Shown here one piece after another: positions 15,832 through 55,944 of a stretch of DNA of 64,000 nt. Source of the stretch: Oopsacas minuta (lineage: Eukaryota > Animalia > Porifera). A model generated the notes under the pieces. The model saw only the letters and a program-made list of their open reading frames with translations. It made no database searches and was not told where the DNA came from. The stretch is from positions 1 to 64,000 of the forward strand of contig JAKMXF010000001.1 in assembly GCA_024704765.1 (NCBI GenBank), in the 5' to 3' direction. A program made the position numbers and the translations under genes. Every line of letters begins with the position of its first letter. Position 1 is the stretch's first letter.

Positions 15832-16609
15832 TGTATATGTATGGACGGATATAAAGAGCAAGAATGAATTCAAAAGTAATAATTCTTTCTATTCAGAGAT
15901 TCTAGCTCTTAGTCTGTAACGTTTAAGAGGTTCTGAATCAGCTTGCTTACAATACCCCAGGGAAAAAAATTAATTAATACAAGTCACACTAACCCTTAGA
16001 AACCAAATTATACATATTGGGGGTATTTAACAAACATACTATTTTGTATTGAGAAACCCTGCTTTAGACTATGAGTTAATCAATAATTATATAATTATCA
16101 CATCCCAACCTATCTGGTAACGATAAATTACTCCTAACAGGGCTCTCAACCTGGGAACACTCAAAATCGTGATTTCGGATAAACTCAAGATTCTATCATG
16201 AGGTGTACTAATTAGTATTAGTCTTTTGTTGAGAAGGCTGGGCATAGAGTTTAGATAGTCGTACATACAACCTAAGCTCATGCCCAGTCTCTAAGTATAT
16301 TTCGAGAATTCAACTATTTGTTTACTCTATATTTATAAAAACGACAATAAATTTACATATGAGAACCTAGAAAATGCGAAATCCGGATCAGCGTACTCGA
16401 TCACCCCAATGTAATTGTTTACTTTTCCTATATCGTTATTCCCTATATTATATACGTAAGTCATATTCCCCTGTTATTTTAATACAAAATGGACAAACAA
16501 ACAATAATAGAGTTTTAAGTAATAGAATAAATAGATAGATAACTATAGTAGCTAAAATAAAGACGTAGAAACAAACAATAGGTTAGTAGTTGCTTTTACA
16601 ACCAACTAG

Positions 16610-17453
16610 TCACCACACATAGGGGATGAGTCGCTTTACACTAGCCTGATAATCTTTGTAGGTTGATTCACGTTCGTACTTAGCTGCTTGCTTTTCAGAC
16701 ATGTCATAGGTTACGAAAAACATCATTGGGACAAAGCATAGAGGGATTATTCCTACTAAAAGCCAGCGAGAAATACTTGGAAAAAGAGAATAACCGGAAA
16801 TTAAAACTCCCAGATGGTAGAGAATTTCTCCAAGGTAGTTAGGATGTCTACAGAGCTTATACACACCATCCTTACAGTACGAGTAAGGTCCGTGTATATA
16901 TTTATGTCTCTTCTTCTGATGGTCAGCGGTTGCTTGAAGAACAGAGCCTAGTGCAATGAGAGACAGGCCAAGCACCCCAGTAGGAGATGAACCATCCCCC
17001 CCTTAGTGTGTATATATAGGGGATAGCATTCCAGCAGGTCATAACCCCAGTTATAGCTAACCAGTTAATAATTCTAACCAGTAGAGAGGCATCACGAAAT
17101 GCAGTATAAGCATTACTTGTTTCAACTATGTGAGTGTTGAGATGCTCGAGAAATGTTTTGTTCTTTCTATAGTACATGTATGAACTAAGTATTATTCCGT
17201 GAAACATCATAGTACTGTTGTAGAGGAGAACGGGTGTAGAGAGAACTGTGCCACTCTTCCATGCAGAAATAGTATTGTATATTGGAAGTATAGCCAAGGA
17301 GAGAGGAAATCCATGTTCATATACGTTGAATGTAGAAATGAGACCGCTGCTGCAGACGATAAGGGGGATACTAGAACTAAGGAGGAACTCCTTCGTGAGA
17401 CCGGGGTCTATTTTAGCCAGGAGAGGTAGTACTTGATGTATATCCAAGTTCAT
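16610..17453 (-). pseudogene. DUF1295 / steroid 5-alpha-reductase-like membrane protein, frameshifted copy
   Basis: Split into two track ORFs by a G7 run (C7 at 16996-17002 on the plus strand) where the intact copy has G6. Confidence 0.75.
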
Positions 17454-17949
17454 TGTGATGGTATATCTATATAATGTATTCAAGATATGTTTGAGTATAC
17501 TTATATAGGCAAAAATATGCACCTAAAATAATACCTCACTTTATTGGCGCCAAGTTTTAGGAAACAAAATCCGACCTGTGGGGACCACCATGGGAAATTG
17601 TTGCTACCTCTGTGTAAATTCACACAAAGTACTGTCTCAACCACTAAACCTGGGGAGTCTAGTCCCCCAGGTACCCAAACTTGGCGACTATGCCTGACTT
17701 CATGTTTGCACCATTATATCTTACAAAATGTATGGCATGAAACTATAGGAAGATAGTCAGGACTGCAATTTATGTACCTATAAAACAACTCTTACCATAC
17801 AAGGTGCAATAATGTTGCATCGTGTATGGTGGCTTAACCTGCACTCAGCGCATATATATCACGAATCATCAGGGTGTTCAATTACTTCGCTTCGCTTCGA
17901 TTTCAAATTGAAATCCTCCAGGAACTCTATGCAGACATGATCAACGTCT

Positions 17950-18440
17950 GAAATGGTAAACGGACATTTCGTCGCTAGGTGCCTAGACCGTATCTGAGAC
18001 TTTTCTATCAATCTATACATATATTGTCTGACTATTTCTAGACCTAGTGCCTCCCTACCTTACTGGGTGTTGGTTGGTGTGTATTTGGGAGCGATATCTT
18101 ATTGTTGACGGTTTTTGATCGAACTGTAGTGTACAAATATACCTTGGATTAGTGGCAGGCTTGTTCCTGGAAGTTGTCAGGATCTCTGACTACCTTAGGT
18201 TGTTGGTTTGGGTCTTTAGAATCTATTGTACTTACTGAATTGGATTTTGTTCGGATTTGTTATCAATATTGCTTATAATTGATTTTCTTCCATAATTGGT
18301 CTTCCCTGGACCACTTATGGTCGGCCATATCTGTATCTAGTCCTTGGACCATGTAAAGTGTAACAGGATCTCAATTTGAACACATTCAGTCCTAAATTTA
18401 AGTTATTCTATAAATTCAATTCTGCGAAATGTCCGCCATT
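17950..18440. mobile_element. Putative non-autonomous DNA transposon inside the duplicated segment
   Basis: 11-bp inverted repeat CGGACATTTCG (17961-17971) / CGAAATGTCCG (18425-18435), with flanking AATGG/CCATT. No TSD identified. Confidence 0.35.
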
Positions 18441-18482
18441 CGTTTGGAATAACCGATACCAAGTTATAATAATGATATAGGA

Positions 18483-20495: not shown

Positions 20496-23400
20496 TTAGG
20501 TCTGTTGGAATTTAGTAAAATCGATATTTAGAGGTTTTCCTATGGTTGATTTGGTCCTAGATTCCGTAAATTTCTTATTCTTCTCTTCGCTAGAAGTCTC
20601 TGATCGCTTCCTGCTGGATAGAATAGCTTGCTCCAATCGCTGTCTCATAGTTACGTCTGAGTTCATAACATCTTTAAACTGTGCGGGGTATTTAGGTCCG
20701 ATCTGTTGCAGAGATTGTAGACAGACCTGATGAGTCTTATTTACCTGAGGTGAAGAACTCTCTTCCTCACTACTCCCCAGTTTAGTCACGAGTACATGAG
20801 TTATGTTTCTGATAAGCTCCGTATTAGCCTTAGGAGGAGCTAGTGCTATCAATATCTCCAGACATGATACCAATTCAGATATGACAGTATCAAGTACATC
20901 TTGGTATTTGGGTGTGGCTAATAGCTCGAATAGAGAGGGTGCAGTCTTACAAATAAAGTTATTAGCTAGGTTCTGGTCACCTAGTGTATACAATTTCTTA
21001 ATTATCTCTATTGTAATAAGGATAATAGATGGATCTCTCCCTCTCAATACTTGACTGTATATAGAGCTACATTCTGATACAAGACCTCCATACTCTACAA
21101 GATATTCAGGTCGTGATAGCATGTAGATAGATAGAGCAATTAGCATAGGTCGTGATGTACGCTGTTTCAATAGCCTGACTACCTCAATGAATCCAGAGCA
21201 GATAACATCTCCCTGGGTGGACAGTTGAGTAGTATTACAGTTGATTAATAATCTCTTCAACTCCTCTAGTACTACAGTATGTACCTCAGAGAATTCCTCC
21301 TGATTGAGGAAGTTAATCATTAGTAGTTGTACAGGTGTAACCACCTGGTTAACTAGATGAGGAGATATTATCTGCGGTATGAGTGATACAGCTCTGAATA
21401 CATTACTCAGTATATCTGCCTGTGTAGATACAGATACGTTAGCTTTGAATACCATGTGTTTCTTGGTAGGCAGAACCTCATGTACTAGCACTCCTATAGT
21501 TAGCACAGTAATACGCAGAAGTTCGTATACTGTATCATCGTAGGGTACGAAGTCTTCCTGTGGGATGGAGCTGGTGCGTTTTGGAGCTAGAGAGTGGGTT
21601 AGAACAAGGGAGATCTTAATCACCCAGTTAAGGGTGTTTAGGTCTTGTTTAGCAAGAGCAAGTCTATGCAGGATGGATAATATCTCAGAGGGGATAGATA
21701 CCTGGTTGCCGAATACTCTGAGTATCCACCTGGATTTGAGAACTGTTTCTAGTGCGAATAGGCAGGAGAATAAAATCTCAACTCTTTCAATAGAGAGAGG
21801 GAAGAATAGGACCTGTGAAACACACCCTAATATCAGGGTTAACTTGTCAACCAGTGGCTGACCAATGTAGCTATCCGACTCGTCCTGACCTGATTGAGAT
21901 AACCAGAGGGAACAGGCCTTGAGGACTTTAGTCCAATGCCGTCGGTAGATTGCTCTAGCATTTTCTGCAGAGTCAAACGTGAAGAAGTGACACTGTTGTG
22001 GTCTGATCATGGACAACTGTGAGGAGGGTAGACTTAAGAGAGAGTAATCGTAGAGGGCATGGAACCAGGAGACGGAGAGCTGAGGGAGATGAAGCTCCAC
22101 AAGAGGACGTAGACTGTTGGAGAGGGCACAATCATTCTCTGAAGAGCTCTGAGGAAACTGACTTCTGTAGTAAACCTCTGCCCAGGCACCAAGTACAGAG
22201 AGAGTTTCTAGAGTAATCATAATGTCTCCATAGAGGTGTTTGGAGCTAGACCCCTGTCCAATCTTGTTAAGACTAGACTCCAGGAGACCAAACACCTTCT
22301 CCAGCTCCTGTCCCCCGGTGGATACCCCACTCACGATCCACTCCCCGCACACCTGACAGGCTAGAGCGGATATGTTAGGTGGCATGTCTGTTTGGAAGGC
22401 GGGACGGAACGCTGCTCCAATCTGAGCTTGGTACTGGATGAGGAATGGACTGCCGGGGAGGTTCGGATCCTCAGATGCTGAGAAGAGACGTATTAGATCT
22501 TGGAGAGCAGTCAAACCAGTCAGTCTTAAATCATGCATACTTCCCGTGCTAGCTAGACACACAACCTGTACCAGATCTCCAAGATAAGTCACTAAGAATT
22601 CTCCACTCTCTGATTTCCCGCGTTTACACAGCTGAGCGTTGAAATGTGCAGGATCTGTACTGCAGAGATCGAACAGTTTTCTCAAAAGCTGAACAAATAT
22701 AACTTGAGTTTTCCACTTGTGAGATTTTGTCTTCTTTATACTAAAGTCTGCTATTGATAAAGTCCTCAAATCCTCGTCATCTTCTCCCACGTCTTCATTA
22801 GATTTATCCTGATCTCCCGGTCCAATCTCTGGGCCTGCTGTTCTAACCTCCTCCTCTTGTAGTCCTGACTCTCTCTGCTCAGCCCCCAGTACTCTCTGAT
22901 ACAGGTATATCCATGTTGATAAACAGCTGGAGTATAGTGCATGCTGCAGACAGTCCAGAATCTCTCTCACATCTCTGACTAACGCGTGATCAGACTCATG
23001 TAAGTCTAGCAGATCTATGAGGGTAGTCAACAGTTGCATTTCATTTCTAGCAGCTATCTCCCAGACAGGTGTGGCATCTTTCTGCACACACTGTCTCAGA
23101 CAGGAGACAGCAGCGTGTGTAACCCATGAGAACGTGACGTCAGGTGTCATACAGGTGTATAGGAAAGGTATGAGAGATGCCTGACTAACATTGTCAGGAC
23201 AGAATAGCAGAGCTTTTTGTAAGGAAGTGATAGCAAACCCCTGCACCACAGGATCATGATGTGCTTTCAACACATAAATACACTGAAGTAGTCTCTCCTT
23301 AGCACGTACCATGCCTTGTATCTCTGGTCCCAGTGCGTCCATTAAGGATCCTAGACATTGACCAGCTGTTCGTATCAATTCAGACTCCAGAGAGGAAGCT

Positions 23401-26400
23401 GTGAAGAGTGACTCGTGTACGAGACAGAGACTTGGATGGATCTGGGGACGGAATAGAGGCCCCCCTGCGTCACACATCTGACTGAGTGAGTAAAGAGCAG
23501 ACATCTGGAGGTGAGGACTGGGGAGTACAGCCATGTCTGAGAGAAGTTTGAAACTTGTAGCTAGATGCTGAGGAGAGCCTAATCCTACATGTTTGTGTAA
23601 AGCAGATAACAACAAGCAGTAACCAGATTTAATACTAACATCTTTGGTGACGTCACTCAATACTTGTTCTATATGTCTGAGTAGCTGAGTGACTATCTGC
23701 TTGTTGGAATGATGAGAGACTGACTGACAGAAGCGAGCTATGGCTCCATTAGACAGACACGAGAGGAGAGGGTTAGAAGTGTTAAGAACCGCGAGTAGGA
23801 AGCTCAACCCTGTTTGAGTTATGTCAGATCCTGATATTAGCTTGCGGAGACTGGATGAGTTACGGAAGGCGAGGAAAAGCGCAGAAACCAGATTGAATAG
23901 CATTACCTGTAGGCGATTCTGTTTGGACTGCTTGACAACATCTTTGAAGTGAGTGAGCAATTGGAATTTATGCTTGTCGGTAGCCTGAGGAAATACTTTA
24001 CCGAACAAACGGATTGATACATTAATTGTAGCTCTACTCACAGGGAGGGAGTGTAAGAAACAGCTGTTATCTTCTTCATTTAATCTCTCCTGGAACAGGG
24101 CACCAGGTAGACATTCTACAGATCCTAATTGCTCTATACAGTTATTCCTGAGGATAGTATCTAGCTCAGAATCCATAGACACATAAGGCAATATGTCAAG
24201 ACATACTAAATCATCTGATTGAGTTAGTTCCCAAGCTAGTGTAGTTTGTAGCGGCATTAAGCTATCCGGCTGTACAAACTGAGCTACTACCTCTCTGAGG
24301 AGAGAACTCATGGAGTCTTCTAGCCAGGAGTCAGGACAGCTGAGTAACAGCTGATATAGTTGTAATTTGAGGAGAGGTATATTGAGAGCTAAATTAGTAT
24401 CAGATGATCTAATTATCTTAGGGAGAGTAGATACAAATGCAATAGCTGATTCTACTGGGAGTTTCAGTTTCTTAGTGACGTCATCAGAACACAGATCAGG
24501 ACACTGTTGTAGGAATATACGCAGAGATGCTAGAGCACCGATACGATGCTCAACTTGTAGTTGTAGAGTTTGTGAATCAAATCCTGACTTCTCCTTCTCC
24601 AGTTCCTCTGGAGAGTGAGGAAAGGAAGATCGCCAGAGAGTGAGTAGCTTAGAGAGGATAGGACGGACAAATGATACACCTAATGAAATGAGAGCTCCTA
24701 ACAGATACCAGCTAGCTCTGACACGAAACAGTTTAGCTTTAAGATCAGTAACACTCTCTAGAATAAGCATATCTTCTGACATAGCTAATACAGACTTAGC
24801 TTTAGTCAGAGGTAGACCTAGATCAGAACAAGTACTAGCACGTACTAGACTAGCAACAGCTAGACTGTATGCACACATATCTGGAGATGGGGATGACTCA
24901 GAGGATAGCTTGCTAAGAGCCCAGTCAATCAATAGACCATTGTGAGTAGGAACAGATATAGCTAGACACTGTAATGTCCATACAGCAGCACATCTACAGA
25001 ATCCATGTCTGTTCTCTAATCCTCCAGCTACAGCACTAACAGCTGATCCAGTCAGCATAGCTCCACTCATCTCTACCGATCCTCCTAGAGTCTCTTGTAT
25101 TAGCTCAGCGGATAGGGTGGATATCCTCTTTATTATAACTCCCAGTACTATAAGTAAACACCCTGATATAGCCTGGTCAGAGGTGAGAGAGGTGTCTAGT
25201 CCTGTGTTAGAGCCCTTCTCCTTACCAGGGGACTTCTGTCTAGCATGAGTAATCACTAGACTACAGAGATGCTTAGCTAGTTCTAACTGCATGTGTTCAT
25301 TAGGAAGTTGAGCTGTCAGCTGTTTCAATAGGAACACTACTAGTTTACGGGAGAGCAGTAAGTCTGTAGATCCATGTTTAGATAGAGACAGTAGCCCTAC
25401 TCCAGAACGCACTAGTTTGTATAGGTTTGATTCCAGCCATCTAGCTCCCATTGTACGTACTAACTCAAGGAGAGACATTACTATCCCTCCCCTACAGCCT
25501 AAGGAAGGATTCTTATTGTAGAGGATATGGATTAGAGACAGTACGTCATCAGGAGTTAGTCTCTTGCTACGACCCTTTTCAATATACTTATCCTCTAAAG
25601 AATGACGTAGATATACAGATACAAAGTGTGCTAGTTCTATCCTGAGGCTGTGATCTGCTCCTTCAAAGGTTTTGATAACAGCTGTAAGGAGCTGTTCAGC
25701 TTCTGAGGGAGAGAGAGTGTGCCAGACACATGAGACCAGCTGAGAGAGACAGCTAACACTCTTTAATCGCACTCTAGAACTCTTGTCCTGTAGCTGAGTC
25801 CTGCATACCTTTAGGATATCTTTGTAACTAGGGGAGAGAGCAGAGCCTAGTCCTACAACAACAGACTGTATGCAGTCTAGCAGGACACAGCGAGTTGAGC
25901 TGTCTCCTTGTTTGAAGGTTCTGAGTAGCAACTGTAATGTTTCAGTGGAATGTGGTCCTGTAGTACGTCCATGGTCTCTGTATAGATGAGATAGCATATG
26001 TATAGCACACAACTTCTGGCTGTACCACTGTTGTTCTGAATCAGAGTTATGTTTCACTCTCAGTACTTCTAAACATTTCTGCAGACTTGTGTTCATCAGC
26101 TGTAGACTGGGGCCAGCTCTATACGCTAGACTACAACACTCTCCTATGATAGGATGAGTACAAGGAGCTGTTGGTATAGAAATAAATGAGTGTAGGAGAG
26201 TGAGGACCTCTTGCTGTTCCTTCTCTCCCCACTCAGGCCAATCCTCTTCTGTATGAGAGGAGCTTGTCAGGGATCGCAGGAATTGTACCATAATTGTGAG
26301 CCAATCGTACATATACGCGTCTCTCTCTGGTTGACTCATGTCTTTGTCATGGAACTTCTTCATGTCGAATGCAAAAATATCCCTGGTTTCTGGTTTGGAC

Positions 26401-26456
26401 AAGCCATACAAATTCGTGGGAGGTATCCAACCTGTCTGATCTTTTATTGCTAACAT
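20496..26456 (-). CDS. HEATR5B: HEAT repeat-containing protein 5 (Laa1/p200 family), single ~6-kb exon
   Basis: ~1986 aa of HEAT repeats with YRDHGR..G, GLPLTKAK..L, LFGKVFP, APFLIQYQAQIGAAFRPAF and LYGD..ITLE.L..L.AWAE. Likely start MLAIKD at 26456. Confidence 0.85.
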   Translation of the reverse strand: MLAIKDQTGWIPPTNLYGLSKPETRDIFAFDMKKFHDKDMSQPERDAYMYDWLTIMVQFLRSLTSSSHTEEDWPEWGEKEQQEVLTLLHSFISIPTAPCTHPIIGECCSLAYRAGPSLQLMNTSLQKCLEVLRVKHNSDSEQQWYSQKLCAIHMLSHLYRDHGRTTGPHSTETLQLLLRTFKQGDSSTRCVLLDCIQSVVVGLGSALSPSYKDILKVCRTQLQDKSSRVRLKSVSCLSQLVSCVWHTLSPSEAEQLLTAVIKTFEGADHSLRIELAHFVSVYLRHSLEDKYIEKGRSKRLTPDDVLSLIHILYNKNPSLGCRGGIVMSLLELVRTMGARWLESNLYKLVRSGVGLLSLSKHGSTDLLLSRKLVVFLLKQLTAQLPNEHMQLELAKHLCSLVITHARQKSPGKEKGSNTGLDTSLTSDQAISGCLLIVLGVIIKRISTLSAELIQETLGGSVEMSGAMLTGSAVSAVAGGLENRHGFCRCAAVWTLQCLAISVPTHNGLLIDWALSKLSSESSPSPDMCAYSLAVASLVRASTCSDLGLPLTKAKSVLAMSEDMLILESVTDLKAKLFRVRASWYLLGALISLGVSFVRPILSKLLTLWRSSFPHSPEELEKEKSGFDSQTLQLQVEHRIGALASLRIFLQQCPDLCSDDVTKKLKLPVESAIAFVSTLPKIIRSSDTNLALNIPLLKLQLYQLLLSCPDSWLEDSMSSLLREVVAQFVQPDSLMPLQTTLAWELTQSDDLVCLDILPYVSMDSELDTILRNNCIEQLGSVECLPGALFQERLNEEDNSCFLHSLPVSRATINVSIRLFGKVFPQATDKHKFQLLTHFKDVVKQSKQNRLQVMLFNLVSALFLAFRNSSSLRKLISGSDITQTGLSFLLAVLNTSNPLLSCLSNGAIARFCQSVSHHSNKQIVTQLLRHIEQVLSDVTKDVSIKSGYCLLLSALHKHVGLGSPQHLATSFKLLSDMAVLPSPHLQMSALYSLSQMCDAGGPLFRPQIHPSLCLVHESLFTASSLESELIRTAGQCLGSLMDALGPEIQGMVRAKERLLQCIYVLKAHHDPVVQGFAITSLQKALLFCPDNVSQASLIPFLYTCMTPDVTFSWVTHAAVSCLRQCVQKDATPVWEIAARNEMQLLTTLIDLLDLHESDHALVRDVREILDCLQHALYSSCLSTWIYLYQRVLGAEQRESGLQEEEVRTAGPEIGPGDQDKSNEDVGEDDEDLRTLSIADFSIKKTKSHKWKTQVIFVQLLRKLFDLCSTDPAHFNAQLCKRGKSESGEFLVTYLGDLVQVVCLASTGSMHDLRLTGLTALQDLIRLFSASEDPNLPGSPFLIQYQAQIGAAFRPAFQTDMPPNISALACQVCGEWIVSGVSTGGQELEKVFGLLESSLNKIGQGSSSKHLYGDIMITLETLSVLGAWAEVYYRSQFPQSSSENDCALSNSLRPLVELHLPQLSVSWFHALYDYSLLSLPSSQLSMIRPQQCHFFTFDSAENARAIYRRHWTKVLKACSLWLSQSGQDESDSYIGQPLVDKLTLILGCVSQVLFFPLSIERVEILFSCLFALETVLKSRWILRVFGNQVSIPSEILSILHRLALAKQDLNTLNWVIKISLVLTHSLAPKRTSSIPQEDFVPYDDTVYELLRITVLTIGVLVHEVLPTKKHMVFKANVSVSTQADILSNVFRAVSLIPQIISPHLVNQVVTPVQLLMINFLNQEEFSEVHTVVLEELKRLLINCNTTQLSTQGDVICSGFIEVVRLLKQRTSRPMLIALSIYMLSRPEYLVEYGGLVSECSSIYSQVLRGRDPSIILITIEIIKKLYTLGDQNLANNFICKTAPSLFELLATPKYQDVLDTVISELVSCLEILIALAPPKANTELIRNITHVLVTKLGSSEEESSSPQVNKTHQVCLQSLQQIGPKYPAQFKDVMNSDVTMRQRLEQAILSSRKRSETSSEEKNKKFTESRTKSTIGKPLNIDFTKFQQT

Positions 26457-26626
26457 ATTGCTGCAGCTATCCACAATAAGTATATATACATAATTACCAA
26501 GCAATTGAACTCGTAAATTGCAAAAATAGGTCATAAAAAACATAATTTACATTAAAAGTTTTAGAATATGCGGCGCACCACTTGCCAGAAGAGCTAATAA
26601 CTAATCTGTAGTATATTGCTTACTAG

Positions 26627-27290: not shown

Positions 27291-30194
27291 CTAGAGATCG
27301 TAGAGTGATTGTAATTTTGAATAAAACAATACAAATTCGTTCTTCATAGTTTTAAAATCAATTTCATTTTGGTTTATTAGTGTAAAGTATTGCCTGGTGA
27401 GTTCTGGCTGTATGCAGAGAGAAGGGAGATAGGTTTCAGTGAGAAAAGTCGCGAGTGCTTTATCTTTGAGGATGATAAGTCTAGAGGCGTTTAAGATGTC
27501 ATTCAGGAGGAGGCTAGTTAGTCCGTCTTTCAAATCAAATGAACGCTTTGCTGGCGTGAGAAAAAGTGCAGGTAATAGATGCTGAAAGGTGAACTCAATG
27601 AGTGGAACAGGGAACTTGTCTATGAGAACTAGAATTACTTTAATAATACTGACAACTTGTTTCTGCAGAATAGGTTTTGAATAGGAGAGGAGTATCTGAA
27701 TGAGAGAAGAGAGGAATGAGTGTAGAGAAGAGGAGGGGAGTTGTATGAGATGTTCTACAAGAGTACTGTTATGTACTAGCGTGTGAGATAGAGAGAGGTA
27801 GGATTTTACCAGATCGAATAATACATTGGGATCATAATCAGGTTTATGCATAGAGCTGAGTGCAGTCATTACTGAAGTAATACAAGGAGATAAAAGCTGT
27901 TCTAGATGTGGACCTGTACGGTTTGGGTGAGCAGCTACTATTTGATTGAGCAGTATACAACACTCCTGAGGTCCTGTTTGAGTGGGAACATGCAGCAATC
28001 TAGTCAGGAGTTCTGGTAGAAAGGGAAGGAACTCTGCTCCCAATATTATAACCATTCTGTGTAGAAAGGGTCTGAATCCTTCTTGTAAGGTGTCCTGCTG
28101 CATAGGGATAGCTAGTATCTTAGAGAAGTGCTCCAACAGATGTAGGAACACATGAGAACATCCTGTCTCCTCTGCTACCTGTTGAGAAGACACGCATTTA
28201 GAAGCGAAACTAGCTAACCGCATGAGGTTACACAGGGTACGAGACAGGTCTACAATACCTGCAGGTACAGGTACATGATTCTGAGGAAGCTGTAACAGCT
28301 GGGTGTGTAGAGTATTAAATGTAAGAGTAAATTGGTCTAATATAGGAGTGAGTAGGGACTGGATTAGAGATCCTTTGTCCCCTTGAGGGGTTGATGAAAA
28401 CATGATGAGTGTACCAGCTGATTCATAGAGGAAGCGTAGGTCTTCTACACCCAGCTGAGAGTCTCTAATAAGACCCCCATCAAATACCTGTAACACTCCG
28501 TTGAGAAGATCAAGAGAGATATCCTTCAAAGATAACTTGAAGTCTTTCAAGAAACGAGTTAGTAAGAAGCATGCTCTGCTACGTACACGAGGATTAGAGT
28601 TCTTGACTCCTCTCTCATCAAGAAAGGAGGATAGGACTAGAGGTAGATAGCCTGTGTTAGCTTTTATGAAGGGTACAAATCTGACCAAGTTTTCTAGGAA
28701 CTGGTAGCTGACAGCCTCGTGTGGATACAGAGCTAATGAGCTGTCCAGTAGTCTATTTAGTATCATATTCCAGGTATTAGATAGCTCATCTCCTAGCTGT
28801 GGGTGTTTCCAGGGTATACTCTCATCAGACAGGTATATGAGATACAATACTACTTCTACATCCATGTACTGTAGTACTGTTAATCTATCTATGACATGTG
28901 ACAACAGCTTGTCTACTTCAGAGAGTACAAGTTGTGGTAGTAGGAGAGATATGGTAGAGAATAGAACTCTAAGCTCTCTACGATAATCAAGAAATAATAC
29001 TTCATTCTCTCCTTCGTTAGCGAAATCATGTGATTCATCGAACTTAAGTTTCTCAAAACATATTAATAAGAGTGTCATTACATTCCTATAGGATTCCTCA
29101 ACTAGCAGCTCCCTATGTGATTTGAATAGAGAGACATAACTGATAACACAGGGGAGAATATTCTCTGATACCCCATCATCTTCTGACTGTAGCATAGTAC
29201 AGATGTAAGAGAATACTCTGTGAAGAGAAGTGAGAAATGGATGAGCTGCTGTCGGCTGATTATTTTCTTTAACAGCTGATTGACAGGCAGTTACCAGCTG
29301 TGAGCCTGTTAGATTTAGGAATTTAGATAATTCAAAGTCTAAATCAAAATCAGTATCTGAATTATTCGTTTGGAATACACCAGCTCTAATAAGGAGTTCT
29401 GTCAGCATTTCTATCAACTTCAGCTTACTGCTCCTCTCCATACCTTTGTTTACGATACCTTGGAAGGTCTCTACCACTGAAATACGGGTCTCTTCTTTGC
29501 CAAGCAGTTGGAGGAAAATGTCTAAAAACCGTGAGTTTATTATGTAAGGGAGATCAATCCATTGAGTATATAATCCCACTACCCGTAGCGTGGTGCATAG
29601 GGTCTCAGGTGTGAAAGAAGTGGAATCAATGAGGATCTGTATCCAGGATTCTACCAGCTGACTGATACACCCCTCTCTCATGTTATCCTTTATGAGATTA
29701 GCTCGTTGTTGATCCTCTAGAGATCGTGGTATAGACTTATCCATGACTTCATCATTCATATAGAGGAGTATGTGTAGATACAGCTGGGTAGGTTCATGGC
29801 TGTATGAAGTGAGATAGGAGAGGATGTCGGAGAAGAATGAGGGCCAGTAGTCAGGATAATCCTGGAGGAACACGTGAATAAATATTTGACACTTCTTATT
29901 GAGGATGAAGGAGGGTTGGGGAGAAGAACTCTGTTCCAACCAGGAGAGTAGTAGCTTTCTGAAGAAGAGCTTATTGTCAGCTGATTCCTGTGAGTATCGA
30001 GTCTTTGAGAATTCCTCCAGGATTCTGAGACAGAAGAATATCACATGTTGATCGTAAGTATTAGACTCCTTAATAGTGTCAGCACATAGCATCCATCCGT
30101 TAGGAGCTGTCAATAGCTGGTTGAAGTAGATTAGGACTTGAGACTGGTTTGAAGTGTCAGGGGAGGATAGGAGGGATGACAAGTTGGGATCCAT
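27291..30194 (-). CDS. XPOT: Exportin-T (tRNA exportin), single exon
   Basis: 967 aa. FFCLRILEE, FILNK..QIF..VFLQDYP..WPSFF, ANLIKDNMRE, YRRELRVLF, FLDERG..NSNPRVRSRACFLL.RF. Confidence 0.9.
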   Translation of the reverse strand: MDPNLSSLLSSPDTSNQSQVLIYFNQLLTAPNGWMLCADTIKESNTYDQHVIFFCLRILEEFSKTRYSQESADNKLFFRKLLLSWLEQSSSPQPSFILNKKCQIFIHVFLQDYPDYWPSFFSDILSYLTSYSHEPTQLYLHILLYMNDEVMDKSIPRSLEDQQRANLIKDNMREGCISQLVESWIQILIDSTSFTPETLCTTLRVVGLYTQWIDLPYIINSRFLDIFLQLLGKEETRISVVETFQGIVNKGMERSSKLKLIEMLTELLIRAGVFQTNNSDTDFDLDFELSKFLNLTGSQLVTACQSAVKENNQPTAAHPFLTSLHRVFSYICTMLQSEDDGVSENILPCVISYVSLFKSHRELLVEESYRNVMTLLLICFEKLKFDESHDFANEGENEVLFLDYRRELRVLFSTISLLLPQLVLSEVDKLLSHVIDRLTVLQYMDVEVVLYLIYLSDESIPWKHPQLGDELSNTWNMILNRLLDSSLALYPHEAVSYQFLENLVRFVPFIKANTGYLPLVLSSFLDERGVKNSNPRVRSRACFLLTRFLKDFKLSLKDISLDLLNGVLQVFDGGLIRDSQLGVEDLRFLYESAGTLIMFSSTPQGDKGSLIQSLLTPILDQFTLTFNTLHTQLLQLPQNHVPVPAGIVDLSRTLCNLMRLASFASKCVSSQQVAEETGCSHVFLHLLEHFSKILAIPMQQDTLQEGFRPFLHRMVIILGAEFLPFLPELLTRLLHVPTQTGPQECCILLNQIVAAHPNRTGPHLEQLLSPCITSVMTALSSMHKPDYDPNVLFDLVKSYLSLSHTLVHNSTLVEHLIQLPSSSLHSFLSSLIQILLSYSKPILQKQVVSIIKVILVLIDKFPVPLIEFTFQHLLPALFLTPAKRSFDLKDGLTSLLLNDILNASRLIILKDKALATFLTETYLPSLCIQPELTRQYFTLINQNEIDFKTMKNEFVLFYSKLQSLYDL

Positions 30195-31057: not shown

Positions 31058-33066
31058 ATTAATGTATTCTATATCATTATTATAACTTGGTATCGGTTAT
31101 TCCAAACGAATGGCGGACATTTCGCAGAATTTAATTTATAGAATAACTTAAATTTAGGACTGAATGTGTTCAAATTGAGATCCTGTTACACTTTACATGG
31201 TCCAAGGACTAGATACAGATATGGCCGACCATAAGTGGTCCAGGGAAGACCAATTATGGAAGAAAATCAATTATAAGCAATATTGATAACAAATCCGAAC
31301 AAAATCCAATTCAGTAAGTACAATAGATTCTAAAGACCCAAACCAACAACCTAAGGTAGTCAGAGATCCTGACAACTTCCAGGAACAAGCCTGCCACTAA
31401 TCCAAGGTATATTTGTACACTACAGTTCGATCAAAAACCGTCAACAATAAGATATCGCTCCCAAATACACACCAACCAACACCCAGTAAGGTAGGGAGGC
31501 ACTAGGTCTAGAAATAGTCAGACAATATATGTATAGATTGATAGAAAAGTCTCAGATACGGTCTAGGCACCTAGCGACGAAATGTCCGTTTACCATTTCA
31601 GACGTTGATCATGTCTGCATAGAGTTCCTGGAGGATTTCAATTTGAAATCGAAGCGAAGCGAAGTAATTGAACACCCTGATGATTCGTGATATATATGCG
31701 CTGAGTGCAGGTTAAGCCACCATACACGATGCAACATTATTGCACCTTGTATGGTAAGAGTTGTTTTATAGGTACATAAATTGCAGTCCTGACTATCTTC
31801 CTATAGTTTCATGCCATACATTTTGTAAGATATAATGGTGCAAACATGAAGTCAGGCATAGTCGCCAAGTTTGGGTACCTGGGGGACTAGACTCCCCAGG
31901 TTTAGTGGTTGAGACAGTACTTTGTGTGAATTTACATAGAGGTAGCAACAATTTCCCATGGTGGTCCCCACAGGTCGGATTTTGTTTCCTAAAACTTGGC
32001 GCCAATAAAGTGAGGTATTATTTTAGGTGCATATTTTTGCCTATATAAGTATACTCAAACATATCTTGAATACATTATATAGATATACCATCACAATGAA
32101 CTTGGATATACATCAAGTACTACCTCTCCTGGCTAAAATAGACCCCGGTCTCACGAAGGAGTTCCTCCTTAGTTCTAGTATCCCCCTTATCGTCTGCAGC
32201 AGCGGTCTCATTTCTACATTCAACGTATATGAACATGGATTTCCTCTCTCCTTTGCTATACTTCCAATATACAATACTATTTCTGCATGGAAGAGTGGCA
32301 CAGTTCTCTCTACACCCGTTCTCCTCTACAACAGTACTATGATGTTTCACGGAATAATACTTAGTTTATACATGTACTATAGAAAGAACAAAACATTTCT
32401 CGAGCATTTCAACACTCACATAGTTGAAACAAGTAATGCTTATACTGCATTACGTGATGCCTCTCTACTGGTTAGAATTATTAACTGGTTAGCTATAACT
32501 GGGGTTATGACCTGCTGGAATGCTATCCCCTATATATACACACTAAGGGGGGATGGTTCATCTCCTACTGGGGTGCTTGGCCTGTCTCTCATTGCACTAG
32601 GCTCTGTTCTTCAAGCAACCGCTGACCATCAGAAGAAGAGACATAAATATATACACGGACCTTACTCGTACTGTAAGGATGGTGTGTATAAGCTCTGTAG
32701 ACATCCTAACTACCTTGGAGAAATTCTCTACCATCTGGGAGTTTTAATTTCCGGTTATTCTCTTTTTCCAAGTATTTCTCGCTGGCTTTTAGTAGGAATA
32801 ATCCCTCTATGCTTTGTCCCAATGATGTTTTTCGTAACCTATGACATGTCTGAAAAGCAAGCAGCTAAGTACGAACGTGAATCAACCTACAAAGATTATC
32901 AGGCTAGTGTAAAGCGACTCATCCCCTATGTGTGGTGACTAGTTGGTTGTAAAAGCAACTACTAACCTATTGTTTGTTTCTACGTCTTTATTTTAGCTAC
33001 TATAGTTATCTATTTATTGATTCTATTACTTAAAATTCTATTATTGTTTGTCCACTTTGTATTAAA
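31058..33066 (+). repeat. Copy 2 of the ~2-kb inverted segmental duplication
   Basis: Reverse complement of 16478-18921 without the MITE. Confidence 0.95.
32096..32938 (+). CDS. DUF1295 / steroid 5-alpha-reductase-like membrane protein, intact copy
   Basis: Multi-pass hydrophobic ORF with ADHQK..HK, CKDGVYKLCRHPNYLGEIL and Y..YQASVKRLIPYVW. First ATG at 32096 (the track start is a GTG). Confidence 0.85.
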   Translation: MNLDIHQVLPLLAKIDPGLTKEFLLSSSIPLIVCSSGLISTFNVYEHGFPLSFAILPIYNTISAWKSGTVLSTPVLLYNSTMMFHGIILSLYMYYRKNKTFLEHFNTHIVETSNAYTALRDASLLVRIINWLAITGVMTCWNAIPYIYTLRGDGSSPTGVLGLSLIALGSVLQATADHQKKRHKYIHGPYSYCKDGVYKLCRHPNYLGEILYHLGVLISGYSLFPSISRWLLVGIIPLCFVPMMFFVTYDMSEKQAAKYERESTYKDYQASVKRLIPYVW

Positions 33067-33375
33067 CAAATTGAGTTTAATAGACTAAGCTGTCGGCACA
33101 GGTTGTGATTTATATTTTATCTCTCTGTTACGGCGATCATTCTTCAACTGTCCCCGGAGAGTAATCAATCTCTCTTCTATCAAGATGGTCTCTGATTCTA
33201 ATTTCTCCCGAACCTACTTTTCTGGGATTTGCCCTATATGAGATGCCATTGTTAATAATGTAAGTATTTATAATACTATTATGATTCAAGGTGTCAAAAG
33301 GCTATAATGATGCCAATTGCCCCCCTCACCTCCAATGCGGCTCTCAATCCAATCCAATTTTGGGAAACCGTAGAG

Positions 33376-48087: not shown

Positions 48088-49131
48088 ATGGAAACAGAAA
48101 ATCTAATAAGCAATGGATTGCTAGAGCGATGTAGAGAGTATATGGGAGATTATTGGACTCTGAACAAACCCAATATATCTGTATCAGTTGTTACAGGTGG
48201 ATTAACAAATTCACTATTTCTACTCAAAATAGAATCTAATGATATAGGAAACATTCCAAACAGCCCAATATGTTGCTTGCTGAGAGTATTTGCTAATATC
48301 TGGTCACAAGAACAGGTAGCTACAAATAATGTCATAAGCACTGTCCTAGCGGAGAGAGGGTTCGGTCCAAAGATATATGGAGTCCTCCCAGGCATGGAAG
48401 GAAGATTAGAAGAGTTCTACTTTTGTCGACAACTCCATACATCTGAAATGATACCTAATTTTGATACTATTGCAGAGATTACTGGAAAGTTCAACAGACA
48501 AACATTACCTCTGCCTAAGAATGGAAATTTCCTCACTAACTCAATGCAGGGATTTCTTGAGAAGATTAATTGTACTCCAATCAAGATAGAAGCGAATAAA
48601 CACAATATAGAGCAATTAAGGAATGAAGTGAATTGGAAGGAGGAAATACAGTGGATGGGTGAGTACTTACGTTCAATTGGTTCTCCTCTCCTCTTATGTC
48701 ATAATGACATCAATGAGAGTAATTTACTTCTGCTAACTGACGGACAACTGAAGCTAATTGATTTTGAATTTGTGAGCTATAATTACAGGGGATTTGAATT
48801 AGCTCAGCTCTTTTACGAATGTTCTATAACCATGACATACCCTGACTACCCATATTTTAAACACTCCCCCGGTGATTATCCAAGTTACGAAGCGAGGAGG
48901 GAATTTGTGGCCAAATACTTAGCAGTATACCAGCCAGGTAATATTCCCTGTGAAGAAGAGATACACTCAGTAGTTCTAGAAGTTGAGAAGATGAAGATAG
49001 CAGTGGATTTATATTGGGTTCTATGGGCTATTGCAATGGCATTCACTGACGATAGATTCGGATATCCTGAGTATGCTCAGTTGAGGATTGATCTATATCG
49101 CTTGGAGAAAGCTAAGCTACCAATAACCTGA
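48088..49131 (+). CDS. Choline/ethanolamine kinase paralog 1
   Basis: TGGLTN, LLRVF, GPKIYG..GRLEEF, Brenner motif CHNDINESN, IDFEFVSYNYRGFEL. Confidence 0.9.
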   Translation: METENLISNGLLERCREYMGDYWTLNKPNISVSVVTGGLTNSLFLLKIESNDIGNIPNSPICCLLRVFANIWSQEQVATNNVISTVLAERGFGPKIYGVLPGMEGRLEEFYFCRQLHTSEMIPNFDTIAEITGKFNRQTLPLPKNGNFLTNSMQGFLEKINCTPIKIEANKHNIEQLRNEVNWKEEIQWMGEYLRSIGSPLLLCHNDINESNLLLLTDGQLKLIDFEFVSYNYRGFELAQLFYECSITMTYPDYPYFKHSPGDYPSYEARREFVAKYLAVYQPGNIPCEEEIHSVVLEVEKMKIAVDLYWVLWAIAMAFTDDRFGYPEYAQLRIDLYRLEKAKLPIT

Positions 49132-51760: not shown

Positions 51761-52831
51761 TTAGCTCTCTAATAACTTAGCCTTTTCAGATTTATACATG
51801 GACAGTCTAGTTTGTGCAAATTCTAGATAACAAAACGTAGCACGAGGTGACTCTATCATAGACAGAGCCCAGATGTATGCCAACATATCTGTTAGTATTC
51901 TACAACTCTCTATCTCTTCTACTATGCTCTCTATCTCAGCAATTGAATGAGTGATATTAGGTTGTAGTGCATGTAGATACATTCTAACAAACTTACATCT
52001 CATGTGGAAAGATGGATAAGCTGCTTCTGAGTAGGAGTAGTATGGAGGTTCTTTAACTGAGTAGTCAAATGCTGATTCCTTGAAAAGCTGAGCTATGTCA
52101 GCTCCTCTGTAATAGTAACTACTGAATTCAAAATCTATACACTTTATAGTTAACTCATCTCTGTCTGTGAGTAATAGGAGGTTAGCTTGACTGTAATCAT
52201 TATGACAGAACACTATAGGATAGTTGAGTTGTTTAAGATGTTGTTCTAACCAGTCTAACTCTTCCTCCCATTTCTTCTCACTCAACATTCCATTCAACAT
52301 ACTCTGTCTCTTGGAATCAGATAGACAAACTTCCTCAGTCTTCTTCAACCATCTTCTCATACATTTGAACACGAAGCTTGCATCCTTAGGTACTGGCATA
52401 TCCTGTAGATGCATCTCTGCTATAATTCTGGTAGTGTGTGTGAGAACATTCTCTTGATACAACTCTAGATTAGTTAGAGTTCTACACTGATAGAAATGTT
52501 CTAGTCTTCCTTGTGAGTGAGACAGGACTCCGTACAGCTTAGGAGCTAGTCCTCTCTCAGAGAGGATAGCGTAGACAATATTCTGAGTGATTATCTCTTC
52601 TTGTGACCAGATGTCAGAGAATAGTCTCAGAATGACAGTATCAGGAGTAGTAGCACTGGTAGAGGGTGTATGTTTCAGTTTTAGAATATACAGTTTATTA
52701 GTTTGTCCTTCTGTAATGGATTCTATATGGATTGGTGCTAGAGGTAGTGAGTACCAGTCTCCTCCCAGTAGTCTCCTACACATGAGTACTGTAGTGTCAG
52801 GAACTGGGATATCTACAGAAGTTGCCATCAC
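51761..52831 (-). CDS. Choline/ethanolamine kinase paralog 2
   Basis: TEGQTN, LAPKLYG, CHNDYSQAN, IDFEFSSYYYRG. Confidence 0.9.
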   Translation of the reverse strand: MMATSVDIPVPDTTVLMCRRLLGGDWYSLPLAPIHIESITEGQTNKLYILKLKHTPSTSATTPDTVILRLFSDIWSQEEIITQNIVYAILSERGLAPKLYGVLSHSQGRLEHFYQCRTLTNLELYQENVLTHTTRIIAEMHLQDMPVPKDASFVFKCMRRWLKKTEEVCLSDSKRQSMLNGMLSEKKWEEELDWLEQHLKQLNYPIVFCHNDYSQANLLLLTDRDELTIKCIDFEFSSYYYRGADIAQLFKESAFDYSVKEPPYYSYSEAAYPSFHMRCKFVRMYLHALQPNITHSIAEIESIVEEIESCRILTDMLAYIWALSMIESPRATFCYLEFAQTRLSMYKSEKAKLLES

Positions 52832-53895
52832 ACAAATACTTACTTGCTAATTTGATTAATAAATAATGTAAGGTCAAGGGTTGGTGGGCAAATTAACTTA
52901 GCTTTACACAGTTACACCATGTTACATCACCAGATTTTACCATACGTATACGTATTTGCAATTTGCATTAATTAATGGAAGTGTGACAATAGTCACAAAA
53001 CCATGCGATACACTCGAAATGGTCAGAGTCGAGTTTATTTACTAACAGAGTTTAGTATGCACTATCAGTACATCCAGTATCCATGCTTGCATATACTGGA
53101 TGGCATATTATGAAATCATTCTAGTACAGATTTACCTTGGATTGATGTAAGAAATGCCCAAGGACATGTACTCGAATTATAATACCTCATAATTTGACAT
53201 AATTGATAATATAATTAGTAATTACCAATAAATTTCATTTTGTAGCAAAATGGTAGAGTCTAATAGCAGTAGTGTAGATATCCCAGTTCCTGACACTACA
53301 GTACTCATGTGTAGGAGACTACTGGGAGGAGACTGGTACTCACTACCTCTAGCACCAATCCATATAGAATCCATTACAGAAGGACAAACTAATAAACTGT
53401 ATATTCTAAAACTGAAACATACACCCTCTACCAGTGCTACTACTCCTGATACTGTCATTCTGAGACTATTCTCTGACATCTGGTCACAAGAAGAGATAAT
53501 CACTCAGAATATTGTCTACGCTATCCTCTCTGAGAGAGGACTAGCTCCTAAGCTGTACGGAGTCCTGTCTCACTCACAAGGAAGACTAGAACATTTCTAT
53601 CAGTGTAGAACTCTAACTAATCTAGAGTTGTATCAAGAGAATGTTCTCACACACACTACCAGAATTATAGCAGAGATGCATCTACAGGATATGCCAGTAC
53701 CTAAGGATGCAAGCTTCGTGTTCAAATGTATGAGAAGATGGTTGAAGAAGACTGAGGAAGTTTGTCTATCTGATTCCAAGAGACAGAGTATGTTGAATGG
53801 AATGTTGAGTGAGAAGAAATGGGAGGAAGAGTTAGACTGGTTAGAACAACATCTTAAACAACTCAACTATCCTATAGTGTTCTGTCATAATGATT
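52195..53895. repeat. Perfect 623-bp inverted repeat (52195-52817 / 53273-53895) with a 455-bp spacer
   Basis: Line-by-line comparison found no mismatch; both arms measure 623 bp. Confidence 0.95.
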
Positions 53896-54335
53896 TATAC
53901 TCACAGAATATAATCAGACTACTAGACAAAGATGAGTTCAATATTCGTGTTATTGACTTTGATATGGCTTCATACAATTATAGAGGTTATGAATTTGCAC
54001 AGCTGTTCCATGACTTATTATTTGACTATTCGTGTACGGCGCATCCTGGCTTCAAGTACTTACCAGATCAGTACCCTTCTCTAGAGCAGAGACAGAATAT
54101 AGTCAGACTGTATTTACAGAGATTATATGACAGGGATACTACCAAGGAGGAAGTAGATCAGCTGGTGAATGAAATACAGCAGACAAGACTGTATTCTTGT
54201 CTGTTCGTGTTTTTATGGGGCTTGAGAGCCTCAGTGGTTTATAACTATCCTTTCGATTCTTTATACTTTGCTAAGGTATATCTTTCAATGTACAATACTG
54301 AGAAAGAAAGATTATCTAAACAAAAATTTGAATAA
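53250..54335 (+). CDS. Choline/ethanolamine kinase paralog 3
   Basis: Identical to paralog 2 from VDIP to CHND, then LYSQN..IDFDMASYNYRG. Confidence 0.9.
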   Translation: MVESNSSSVDIPVPDTTVLMCRRLLGGDWYSLPLAPIHIESITEGQTNKLYILKLKHTPSTSATTPDTVILRLFSDIWSQEEIITQNIVYAILSERGLAPKLYGVLSHSQGRLEHFYQCRTLTNLELYQENVLTHTTRIIAEMHLQDMPVPKDASFVFKCMRRWLKKTEEVCLSDSKRQSMLNGMLSEKKWEEELDWLEQHLKQLNYPIVFCHNDLYSQNIIRLLDKDEFNIRVIDFDMASYNYRGYEFAQLFHDLLFDYSCTAHPGFKYLPDQYPSLEQRQNIVRLYLQRLYDRDTTKEEVDQLVNEIQQTRLYSCLFVFLWGLRASVVYNYPFDSLYFAKVYLSMYNTEKERLSKQKFE

Positions 54336-54507
54336 CTACGCGTAGATATTAAAGCTTGAATCCTTGAGTTATTTATTACATATTATATCAAGTTAGTGTG
54401 AAAATTGAATTGAATAGTCAGTGGTTTCTGAATTAACGAAAGTCCACTGCATATTCAATACAATTTCTATATATCTCTACGATCCTAGTGTATATATCAA
54501 AATTGTA

Positions 54508-55944
54508 CTAATTAGCTAACTTTACGCAACACCATAACTCAGAGTTATCTAGGGGAATATGTATTGTACCATCTCCTCTGTATTGTACAGCCTTGAGGGT
54601 GAGATCTTTTGAATGATTAAACTTGAAAGGATAATTTTGAAAATTAATCACATGTTTGTAGTACCATTTATCCAGGATATGGTGTAGTGATACAGGAATA
54701 TCATTCTTCAATTCACTCATGTGATCATTAGTAAGGATGTACCCCCGCTGTTTCATGCTCAGAGCTCCGTAAACTGCGAATAGATCGTCTCTTGAATCAT
54801 AACTAGTTGTGAATAAGCTATTTTGTTTTTCAAGTAATTTCCAGTTTGTAATATTAGAAGGAGTTCTCAGGACCACGCGACGGACAACAATAAAAGCATT
54901 CGAGATGGAAAAGACGTTTTTAACTTCTGCAATTCTATCCTTTAAGACTTCTATTCTAAAGCCTTTTTGGTTAATATAAGATACATTCATACCATCAACG
55001 AACAAAACTTTATTTTTAGTGTTGGCTACTGAATTAGAAAAAGTATAGAAAATATCCTGAAATGCTGAGAGCTCTGCCTTCATCTGTTCTGTACGTTGAT
55101 AGTTTATATATTGATTAGTGAATATGCGATTTACTTCTGAAAATAATATTTTGTACTCTTCATCTGTTACTTCTAGATCACGAAGCTTTGTTTCACAGTT
55201 AGAACAAAATCCTCTTTCTAAACGTACGTCACTATTAATGGATGGATTCAGTTTAGAAAATGTGGCAATCAGCTGATTGAATACTTCACTGGCAATTACA
55301 GCTAGTTTATGGTTGTGATAATGTAATAAAACTTTTTTGAATGTTCCTAATAACACAGAATTATTTGGATCCTTCTCAACAGCTATACTGAGAGCATTCA
55401 ATAAGTAATCTATCTGTTTACAGTTCAAACTAAGGAAGCTACTTACTAGGTTATCTACTGCTTGATAGTCTTTTGTTTGTGACAGTAAATAATCCATTGC
55501 TGAGGTAAATGCAAACTTTCTCAAAGGAAGTTGTTTAGAGAATATTCTATCTAACATCTCTAGCAAGAGGTCTGTCTGTTGATTAGTTATCGCATTAGAT
55601 ATCAGTGAGGATAGTAGAGCAGGTTCTGGTTGTATCGATAGCTCCTCGAGATAACTACACAGTTCATTGAAAGAGATTGGATTGCCTGTTTCAACAGATA
55701 AGTCTACACCAATCTTCAAGACTTGAGGTGAAAATTTACTCTTTTGTTCTTTCAAATTGGTGAAAAGTTGAAACGCATTATTGTAGTCTTTTGATTTAGC
55801 CAATCTATACAATTCTTTTTCTTCTGTAGAAGAGAATGTTTTCAATTTTGGAATTCTTAAACGATATTCAGTGTCATGAAATGAATTATTTGAGAACGAT
55901 CTCACATTTATGCCTGGAATAATTCTCCGATAGAAACAAAACAT
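54508..55944 (-). CDS. PRORP: Protein-only RNase P catalytic subunit (MRPP3)
   Basis: Transit-peptide-like N-terminus, PPR-like helices, CSNC zinc site, NYN motifs VDGMN, SRDDLF and LTNDHM, C-terminal WCC. Confidence 0.9.
   Translation of the reverse strand: MFCFYRRIIPGINVRSFSNNSFHDTEYRLRIPKLKTFSSTEEKELYRLAKSKDYNNAFQLFTNLKEQKSKFSPQVLKIGVDLSVETGNPISFNELCSYLEELSIQPEPALLSSLISNAITNQQTDLLLEMLDRIFSKQLPLRKFAFTSAMDYLLSQTKDYQAVDNLVSSFLSLNCKQIDYLLNALSIAVEKDPNNSVLLGTFKKVLLHYHNHKLAVIASEVFNQLIATFSKLNPSINSDVRLERGFCSNCETKLRDLEVTDEEYKILFSEVNRIFTNQYINYQRTEQMKAELSAFQDIFYTFSNSVANTKNKVLFVDGMNVSYINQKGFRIEVLKDRIAEVKNVFSISNAFIVVRRVVLRTPSNITNWKLLEKQNSLFTTSYDSRDDLFAVYGALSMKQRGYILTNDHMSELKNDIPVSLHHILDKWYYKHVINFQNYPFKFNHSKDLTLKAVQYRGDGTIHIPLDNSELWCCVKLAN

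Follow-up and report, generated by a model that had tools for sequence, protein, structure and literature searches.

How can two neighbouring genes be identical in every nucleotide over the first part of their length and steeply diverged over the remainder? The question is raised by a head-to-head pair of genes of the choline/ethanolamine-kinase family, here called A and B, in the glass sponge Oopsacas minuta. The pair occupies positions 51761 to 54335 of a 64,000-nucleotide stretch (positions 1 to 64,000 of contig JAKMXF010000001.1, assembly GCA_024704765.1), to which we refer as the window. The 5' parts of the two genes form the arms of a small palindrome, and we consider it very likely that these arms are held alike by continual gene conversion between A and B, maintained through the diversification of glass sponges. 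The genes and the elements of the palindrome are the following:

51761-52828, minus strand: gene A, choline/ethanolamine-kinase family, 355 amino acids from the ATG, with a C-terminal part of type A (HND-YSQAN...)
53250-54335, plus strand: gene B, choline/ethanolamine-kinase family, 361 amino acids, with a C-terminal part of type B (HND-LYSQN...)
52195..52817, minus strand: left arm of the inverted repeat, gene A residues 5-211 and the first base of codon 212 (VDIP... to ...FCHND)
53273..53895, plus strand: right arm of the inverted repeat, gene B residues 9-215, the reverse complement of the left arm
52818..53272, no strand: unique 455-nucleotide spacer with both start codons and a few type-specific N-terminal codons
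51764..52194, minus strand: unconverted part of gene A, encoding the acceptor pocket, the choline-kinase motif and what remains of the Brenner motif; its orthologs are the type-A C-terminal parts of relatives
53896..54332, plus strand: unconverted part of gene B, orthologous to the type-B C-terminal parts of relatives

A repeat search finds an inverted repeat of 2 x 623 nucleotides, 100% complementary and 455 nucleotides apart, and a script comparison agrees, with 0 differences between the arms over 623 nucleotides, synonymous sites included. The arm occurs at these two places only in the 61.46-Mb genome; otherwise there is one 71%-identical stretch of 140 nucleotides in a third paralog, par1. 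Both open reading frames (ORFs) are intact and in frame, and they are transcribed away from each other across the spacer. The arm starts at nucleotide 12 of gene A and nucleotide 24 of gene B, the third base of the Ser codon before VDIP, and it ends in both genes one base beyond the Asp codon of the His-Asn-Asp (HND) of the Brenner motif, the converted stretch being the first 58% of each gene. Beyond the arm, A and B share 51% nucleotide identity, 40% at third codon positions, and 36% amino acid identity, with NG86 estimates of 1.8 for synonymous divergence (dS) and 0.66 for nonsynonymous divergence (dN). Complete DNA identity that ends abruptly against saturated divergence, as it does here, is a mark of a gene-conversion tract.

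An earlier note on this DNA, made from the window's letters, had described a head-to-head kinase pair with perfectly identical 623-bp arms, the identity running from VDIP to the catalytic HND and giving way there to steep divergence, and had placed the end of the tract at the catalytic motif. All of this is borne out by the comparisons above, and the end of the tract falls at the same Asp in the pairs of relatives described below. Two of its descriptions need adjustment. The 455-bp spacer does hold both start codons, although the 'MMATS' given for gene A carries an extra M that is an upstream GTG taken by the ORF finder, the likely start being the ATG that gives MATS. The 'N-lobe half' is a loose term for the arm, which comprises the N-lobe and continues into the C-terminal lobe as far as the catalytic loop.

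The spacer, with 33% guanine plus cytosine (GC), contains the ATG of gene A (52826-52828, minus strand) and that of gene B (53250-53252, plus strand), each followed by its type-specific codons (MATS in gene A and MVESNSSS in gene B), and it presumably also holds a shared divergent promoter region. Its internal symmetry scores 36, which is not significant when shuffled versions average 25.9 +/- 5.1 and reach 44, and a scan of it for bacterial-type promoters and terminators was uninformative, as expected for animal DNA. There is a hairpin-capable element at 53071-53103, with 10-nucleotide arms CATCCAGTAT and ATACTGGATG around 12 nucleotides, which likewise does not stand out significantly from shuffled sequence. 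Comparison of genes A and B for residual homology on their 5' and 3' sides found the flanks unrelated.

Both proteins belong to the choline/ethanolamine kinase family by full-length profile matches above the curated cut-off. The PF01633 match has an E-value of 6e-62 for gene A and 5e-60 for gene B, with scores of 210 bits (A), 204 (B) and 194 (par1) against a cut-off of 29, and positions 1-300 of the 300 in the profile are covered. The third family member in the window served as a near outgroup; it is 31-36% identical to A and B and stands outside the conversion:

48088..49131, plus strand: third paralog par1, 347 amino acids, PF01633

The comparison across species was made at the protein level, on proteins of ENA and Logan assemblies found by a word-based protein search. 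A tight group of homologs has 50-74% identity, all remaining matches being ordinary animal choline kinases at about 33%, and the assemblies from which the group comes are presumably those of other glass sponges. These homologs (P0003-P0012 and P0121-P0125) sort into the same two types as in O. minuta, type A with the signature HND-F/Y/L-SQAN... and type B with the signature HND-L/V-YSQN.... To judge by identical contig sizes, four further A/B pairs each lie on one contig:

P0004 and P0008: contig of 662,274 bp
P0123 and P0124: contig of 467,050 bp
P0005 and P0009: contig of 1,190,026 bp
P0121 and P0011: contig of 6,214 bp

The two parts of these proteins behave in opposite ways. The N part, from VDIP to HND, is 100% identical within the O. 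minuta pair and 93, 94, 93 and 98% identical within the other four, as against 57-80% between assemblies. The C part, after HND, is 30-39% identical within pairs, while same-type orthologs of different lineages share 53-83%. A two-rate maximum-likelihood change-point fit places the change at the Asp of HND in every pair.

Trees of the N part and the C part, computed separately with IQ-TREE under LG+C20 and compared by approximately unbiased (AU) tests, lead to the same division. The N-part tree clusters by assembly, and forcing a type-A or a type-B clade on it costs about 440 log-likelihood units, the AU test rejecting the type-A clade with p = 6e-56 and the type-B clade with p = 7e-4. In the C-part tree A and B are split by a branch with 100/100 support and a length of 1.78, and clades within assemblies are rejected with p = 2e-5 to 2e-9. 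Trees, AU tests, identity matrices and change points thus agree that the converted part groups by species and the unconverted part by paralog. Judged from these sequences, the A/B duplication is older than the divergence of all sampled assemblies, and N parts that are near-identical in each lineage despite so old a duplication would be explained only by continual conversion.

Two very close assemblies, s4a and s4b (proteins P0004, P0008, P0123 and P0124), give a view of the process at finer scale. Among the variable N-part sites of this quartet 5 follow orthology, 1 follows the assembly and 2 are swapped between the paralogs, the other 12 being singletons; the ortholog-specific sites cluster near the N-terminus. 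This mosaic fits frequent short conversion tracts, whose frequency would fall off approaching the arm's inner edge. Between s4a and s4b the converted N part is 93-96% identical and the unconverted C part 98-99%, which suggests either raised diversity in the converted tract or two haplotypes of one very heterozygous individual.

Where the boundary falls in the protein can be read from homology with human choline kinases. Among solved structures, A and B come closest to human choline kinase alpha and beta (PDB 2CKO and 3FEG; E-values of 9e-50 and 7e-44), which have the same fold family and are 30-34% identical. In these terms the converted part runs from the ATP-binding loop through the catalytic Asp (Asp-306, alpha-1 numbering), and the entire acceptor groove lies in the unconverted part (residue list in PMC2871500), along with the choline-kinase motif and what is left of the Brenner motif. 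The equivalents of Asp-306 and Asn-311 of the Brenner motif (HxDxxxxN) and of Asp-330 of the choline-kinase motif are the same in every A, B and par1 sequence, and because these catalytic residues are invariant A and B are both probably active as kinases.

The acceptor pocket is a different matter. The residues lining the choline pocket are Tyr-354, Phe-361, Trp-420, Trp-423, Phe-435 and Tyr-437, along with Tyr-440 (PMC2871500). Trp-420 is replaced by Ala or Gly in every type A and by Val in every type B, and Tyr-440 is Phe in types A and B alike; type B has in addition Gly for Phe-361 and Ser or Pro for Tyr-437. Neither A nor B therefore has the canonical choline pocket, and the acceptor substrate of the pair may be other than choline. 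Since par1 retains W420, W423, F435, Y437 and Y440, it is probably the ordinary, housekeeping choline/ethanolamine kinase. It is reasonable to regard A and B as a glass-sponge-specific pair in which altered, type-specific acceptor pockets are carried on one shared nucleotide-binding module.

We infer a recombination mechanism of the following kind. A and B would be ancient head-to-head duplicates, the 5' 623 nucleotides of each forming one arm of the small palindrome. A break in one arm would be repaired with the other arm as template, by non-crossover gene conversion, and in each lineage this would have kept the arms nearly or fully identical from a time earlier than the divergence of the sampled glass sponges. 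Inwards the tract would stop at the unique spacer, and outwards at the C parts, which are only about 51% identical in DNA; overwriting of the C parts would probably also be harmful, to judge by the type-specific pocket substitutions conserved across assemblies. The outcome would be one shared ATP-binding and scaffold module joined to two distinct acceptor modules. Resolution of such an event as a crossover within the arms would invert the spacer, and occasional inversion is a possible by-product.

Several observations weigh against this account. The GC content of third codon positions (GC3) is not raised in the arms (0.367, compared with 0.35 for the C parts taken together, Fisher p = 0.78; background in the window 0.365 +/- 0.038), and the arms bear no footprint of GC-biased conversion, although such a footprint is an accessory feature of conversion and not a defining one. 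The exact 100% identity of the arms comes from a Pilon-polished hybrid assembly in which 1-2 real differences could be hidden. The cross-species evidence is confined to proteins, and the genes in the relatives are presumed to have the inverted orientation. Scanning a genome contig collection for related loci found no relative, and a scan of metagenome contigs gave 80 loci that are all distant choline kinases of at most 45% identity, with no glass sponge among them. Finally, protein searches left s3, s7 and s8 lacking an A partner and s6 lacking a B partner; searches for partners with the type-A C part, as a region and as a separate piece, yielded nothing beyond the A types already known and a single fragment, P0126. 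These gaps may come from fragmentation of assemblies at the repeat or from the length filter of the search.

The proposal that survives best beside continual conversion is a refinement of it rather than a competitor, namely that the identity of the N parts is itself selected, through a shared partner or through A/B heterodimers, with conversion as the means. Homogenisation has been kept in all five same-contig pairs across deep divergence, and both types retain their catalytic residues yet carry conserved type-specific pocket changes, as this proposal would have it. Mammalian choline kinases, moreover, form alpha/beta heterodimers. Our literature search on the choline-kinase dimer interface and on heterodimers gave nothing usable, however, and the heterodimer idea is therefore speculative. 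The same pattern would be expected from a neutral, self-reinforcing process in which conversion depends on homology and in turn maintains it, and the greater divergence of the N part than of the C part between s4a and s4b gives no sign of unusually strong constraint. Any selective value of arm identity would be an addition to continual conversion that we hold to be possible but rather unlikely. A step further, and somewhat more doubtful, is the idea that the palindrome as a whole is a selected device, which would keep one ATP-binding and scaffold module strictly co-evolving in two kinases whose acceptor pockets differ and are both non-canonical, for instance for the sake of a heterodimer or shared partner, and, by an occasional flip of the spacer, would create polymorphism in the combination of promoter and kinase.

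The earlier note had also raised the possibility of a functional invertible cassette, in which crossover between the arms inverts the spacer, so that promoters and N-termini are exchanged between the two C-terminal modules, a potential on/off or isoform switch. Such a switch would be regulated or serve for bet-hedging. The geometry would permit a flip without damage to either ORF, inverted repeats of such a size can recombine, and reciprocal exchange could account for the 2 swapped sites of the s4a/s4b quartet. The spacer, however, has no notable motifs or symmetry, and only 4-8 residues would be swapped. If spacers flipped, the linkage between N-terminus and C-terminal type should vary among close relatives; instead, type A begins with MAE... 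and type B with MAFCSENT... in s4a and s4b alike, and the longer N-terminus goes with type B in O. minuta as in s4, which suggests a stable linkage, although in so small a sample this is weak evidence. In s5 the two N-termini are identical and there would be no isoform to swap. As conversion alone accounts for everything that is seen, we think a switch very improbable.

We give as little credence to an artefact of assembly or polishing, whereby the arms would not truly be identical or the O. minuta locus would be mis-joined. The assembly (365 scaffolds, about 61 Mb, 36% GC) is a SPAdes hybrid of Illumina and Canu-corrected PacBio reads, subsequently treated with SSPACE, Pilon and GapFiller (PMC10280926). 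Bulge removal in SPAdes (k up to 99) or polishing with multi-mapped reads can erase a few differences between near-identical repeats, and only reads or read pairs that exceed an arm in length can establish the orientation of a spacer between 623-nucleotide inverted arms. Against this, both ORFs are intact and in frame, and the window contains a second palindrome that retains differences of about 0.5% between its arms:

16480-18480 and 31069-33070: arms of palindrome 2, about 2.0 kb each, 99-100% identical with about 10 substitutions, around a 12.6-kb spacer

Since some 10 differences are kept there, the pipeline does not as a rule erase small differences. In the assemblies of other organisms the N parts are again near-identical and the C parts divergent, the break lies at the same point, and the small differences that exist are real; being non-zero within pairs, they indicate separate copies rather than collapsed ones. 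An artefact is thereby excluded as the main cause, and would account at most for the last 0-1% of identity or for the orientation of the spacer.

Least probable of all is a single very recent conversion or chimera event in O. minuta that overwrote one divergent N-terminal half, to which the 0 differences in 623 nucleotides beside saturated divergence might point; it is excluded because conversion needs homology, and halves with the 51% nucleotide identity of the C parts would not recombine to start it, and because at least four other same-contig pairs, with N parts 20-43% different from those of O. minuta, show the pattern again and have their break in the same position; independent single events in each lineage would be far less parsimonious there than continuous homogenisation. 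The four further pairs also bear on the choice left by the earlier note, which had the N-terminal half overwritten 'very recently or continually': they support the second, and the first, as one event, does not hold. Nor is one gene a chimera with an identifiable donor, as it had supposed; the pairs of the relatives indicate that both genes are perpetual mosaics.

Continual conversion restricted to part of a gene is a known process, domain-restricted concerted evolution, and its closest documented parallels are the paired receptors SIGLEC5/14, SIGLEC11/16 and the CEACAM pairs (PMC4042635, PMC5701461, PMC2832619). There, as here, neighbouring paralogs have one part that is near-identical through repeated conversion in several species while the rest is divergent and functionally distinct. 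The SIGLEC and CEACAM genes are vertebrate immune receptors with introns, in which pathogen pressure on the ligand-binding domain is thought to be the driver, whereas A and B are an intronless pair of sponge metabolic-enzyme genes in which the nucleotide-binding half is shared and the boundary lies inside the catalytic motif. The palindromes of the primate Y and X chromosomes offer a second comparison: their arms are more than 99.9% identical through intrachromosomal conversion over long periods, the spacer is unique, and spacer inversion is a known by-product. Those arms measure 10 kb to more than 1 Mb and contain whole genes, whereas the 623-nucleotide arms here take in only the 5' 58% of each gene, with the consequence that the two products differ. 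What is unusual in the present case is the small size of the palindrome, the position of its boundary inside the catalytic motif of a metabolic enzyme, and the conservation of the arrangement across assemblies.

As to the surroundings, par1 sits 2.6 kb from gene A with a VPS22/EAP30 gene in between. On the other side, 172 nucleotides (54336-54507) separate the stop of gene B (54335) from that of a convergent gene for protein-only RNase P (PRORP, 54508-55944), a gap that reflects tight gene packing at the locus. The spacer of palindrome 2 contains a HEATR5-like gene (20496-26543) and an exportin-T gene (27291-30194), and each of its arms has a gene for a DUF1295/steroid-reductase-like membrane protein. 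The right copy of that gene is intact (32027-32938, 303 amino acids), and the left copy (16610-17522) is split by a 1-nucleotide difference in a C run.

The A/B locus is a very clean natural case of gene conversion confined to part of a gene: the tract stops one base after the catalytic Asp codon, and the related assemblies with both genes all have their boundary at this place. On this evidence small palindromes can endure in a compact animal genome and go on being homogenised through long stretches of evolution. The spacer orientation as assembled is best taken as provisional, and gene trees built from the A and B proteins should treat the two halves apart, since trees of the undivided proteins will be misleading. 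For the kinase family, the pair amounts to a natural domain-swap experiment, in which one N-terminal module is set on two acceptor modules that both lack the canonical choline-pocket Trp, and the altered pockets point to other substrates that this glass-sponge-specific kinase pair may use.

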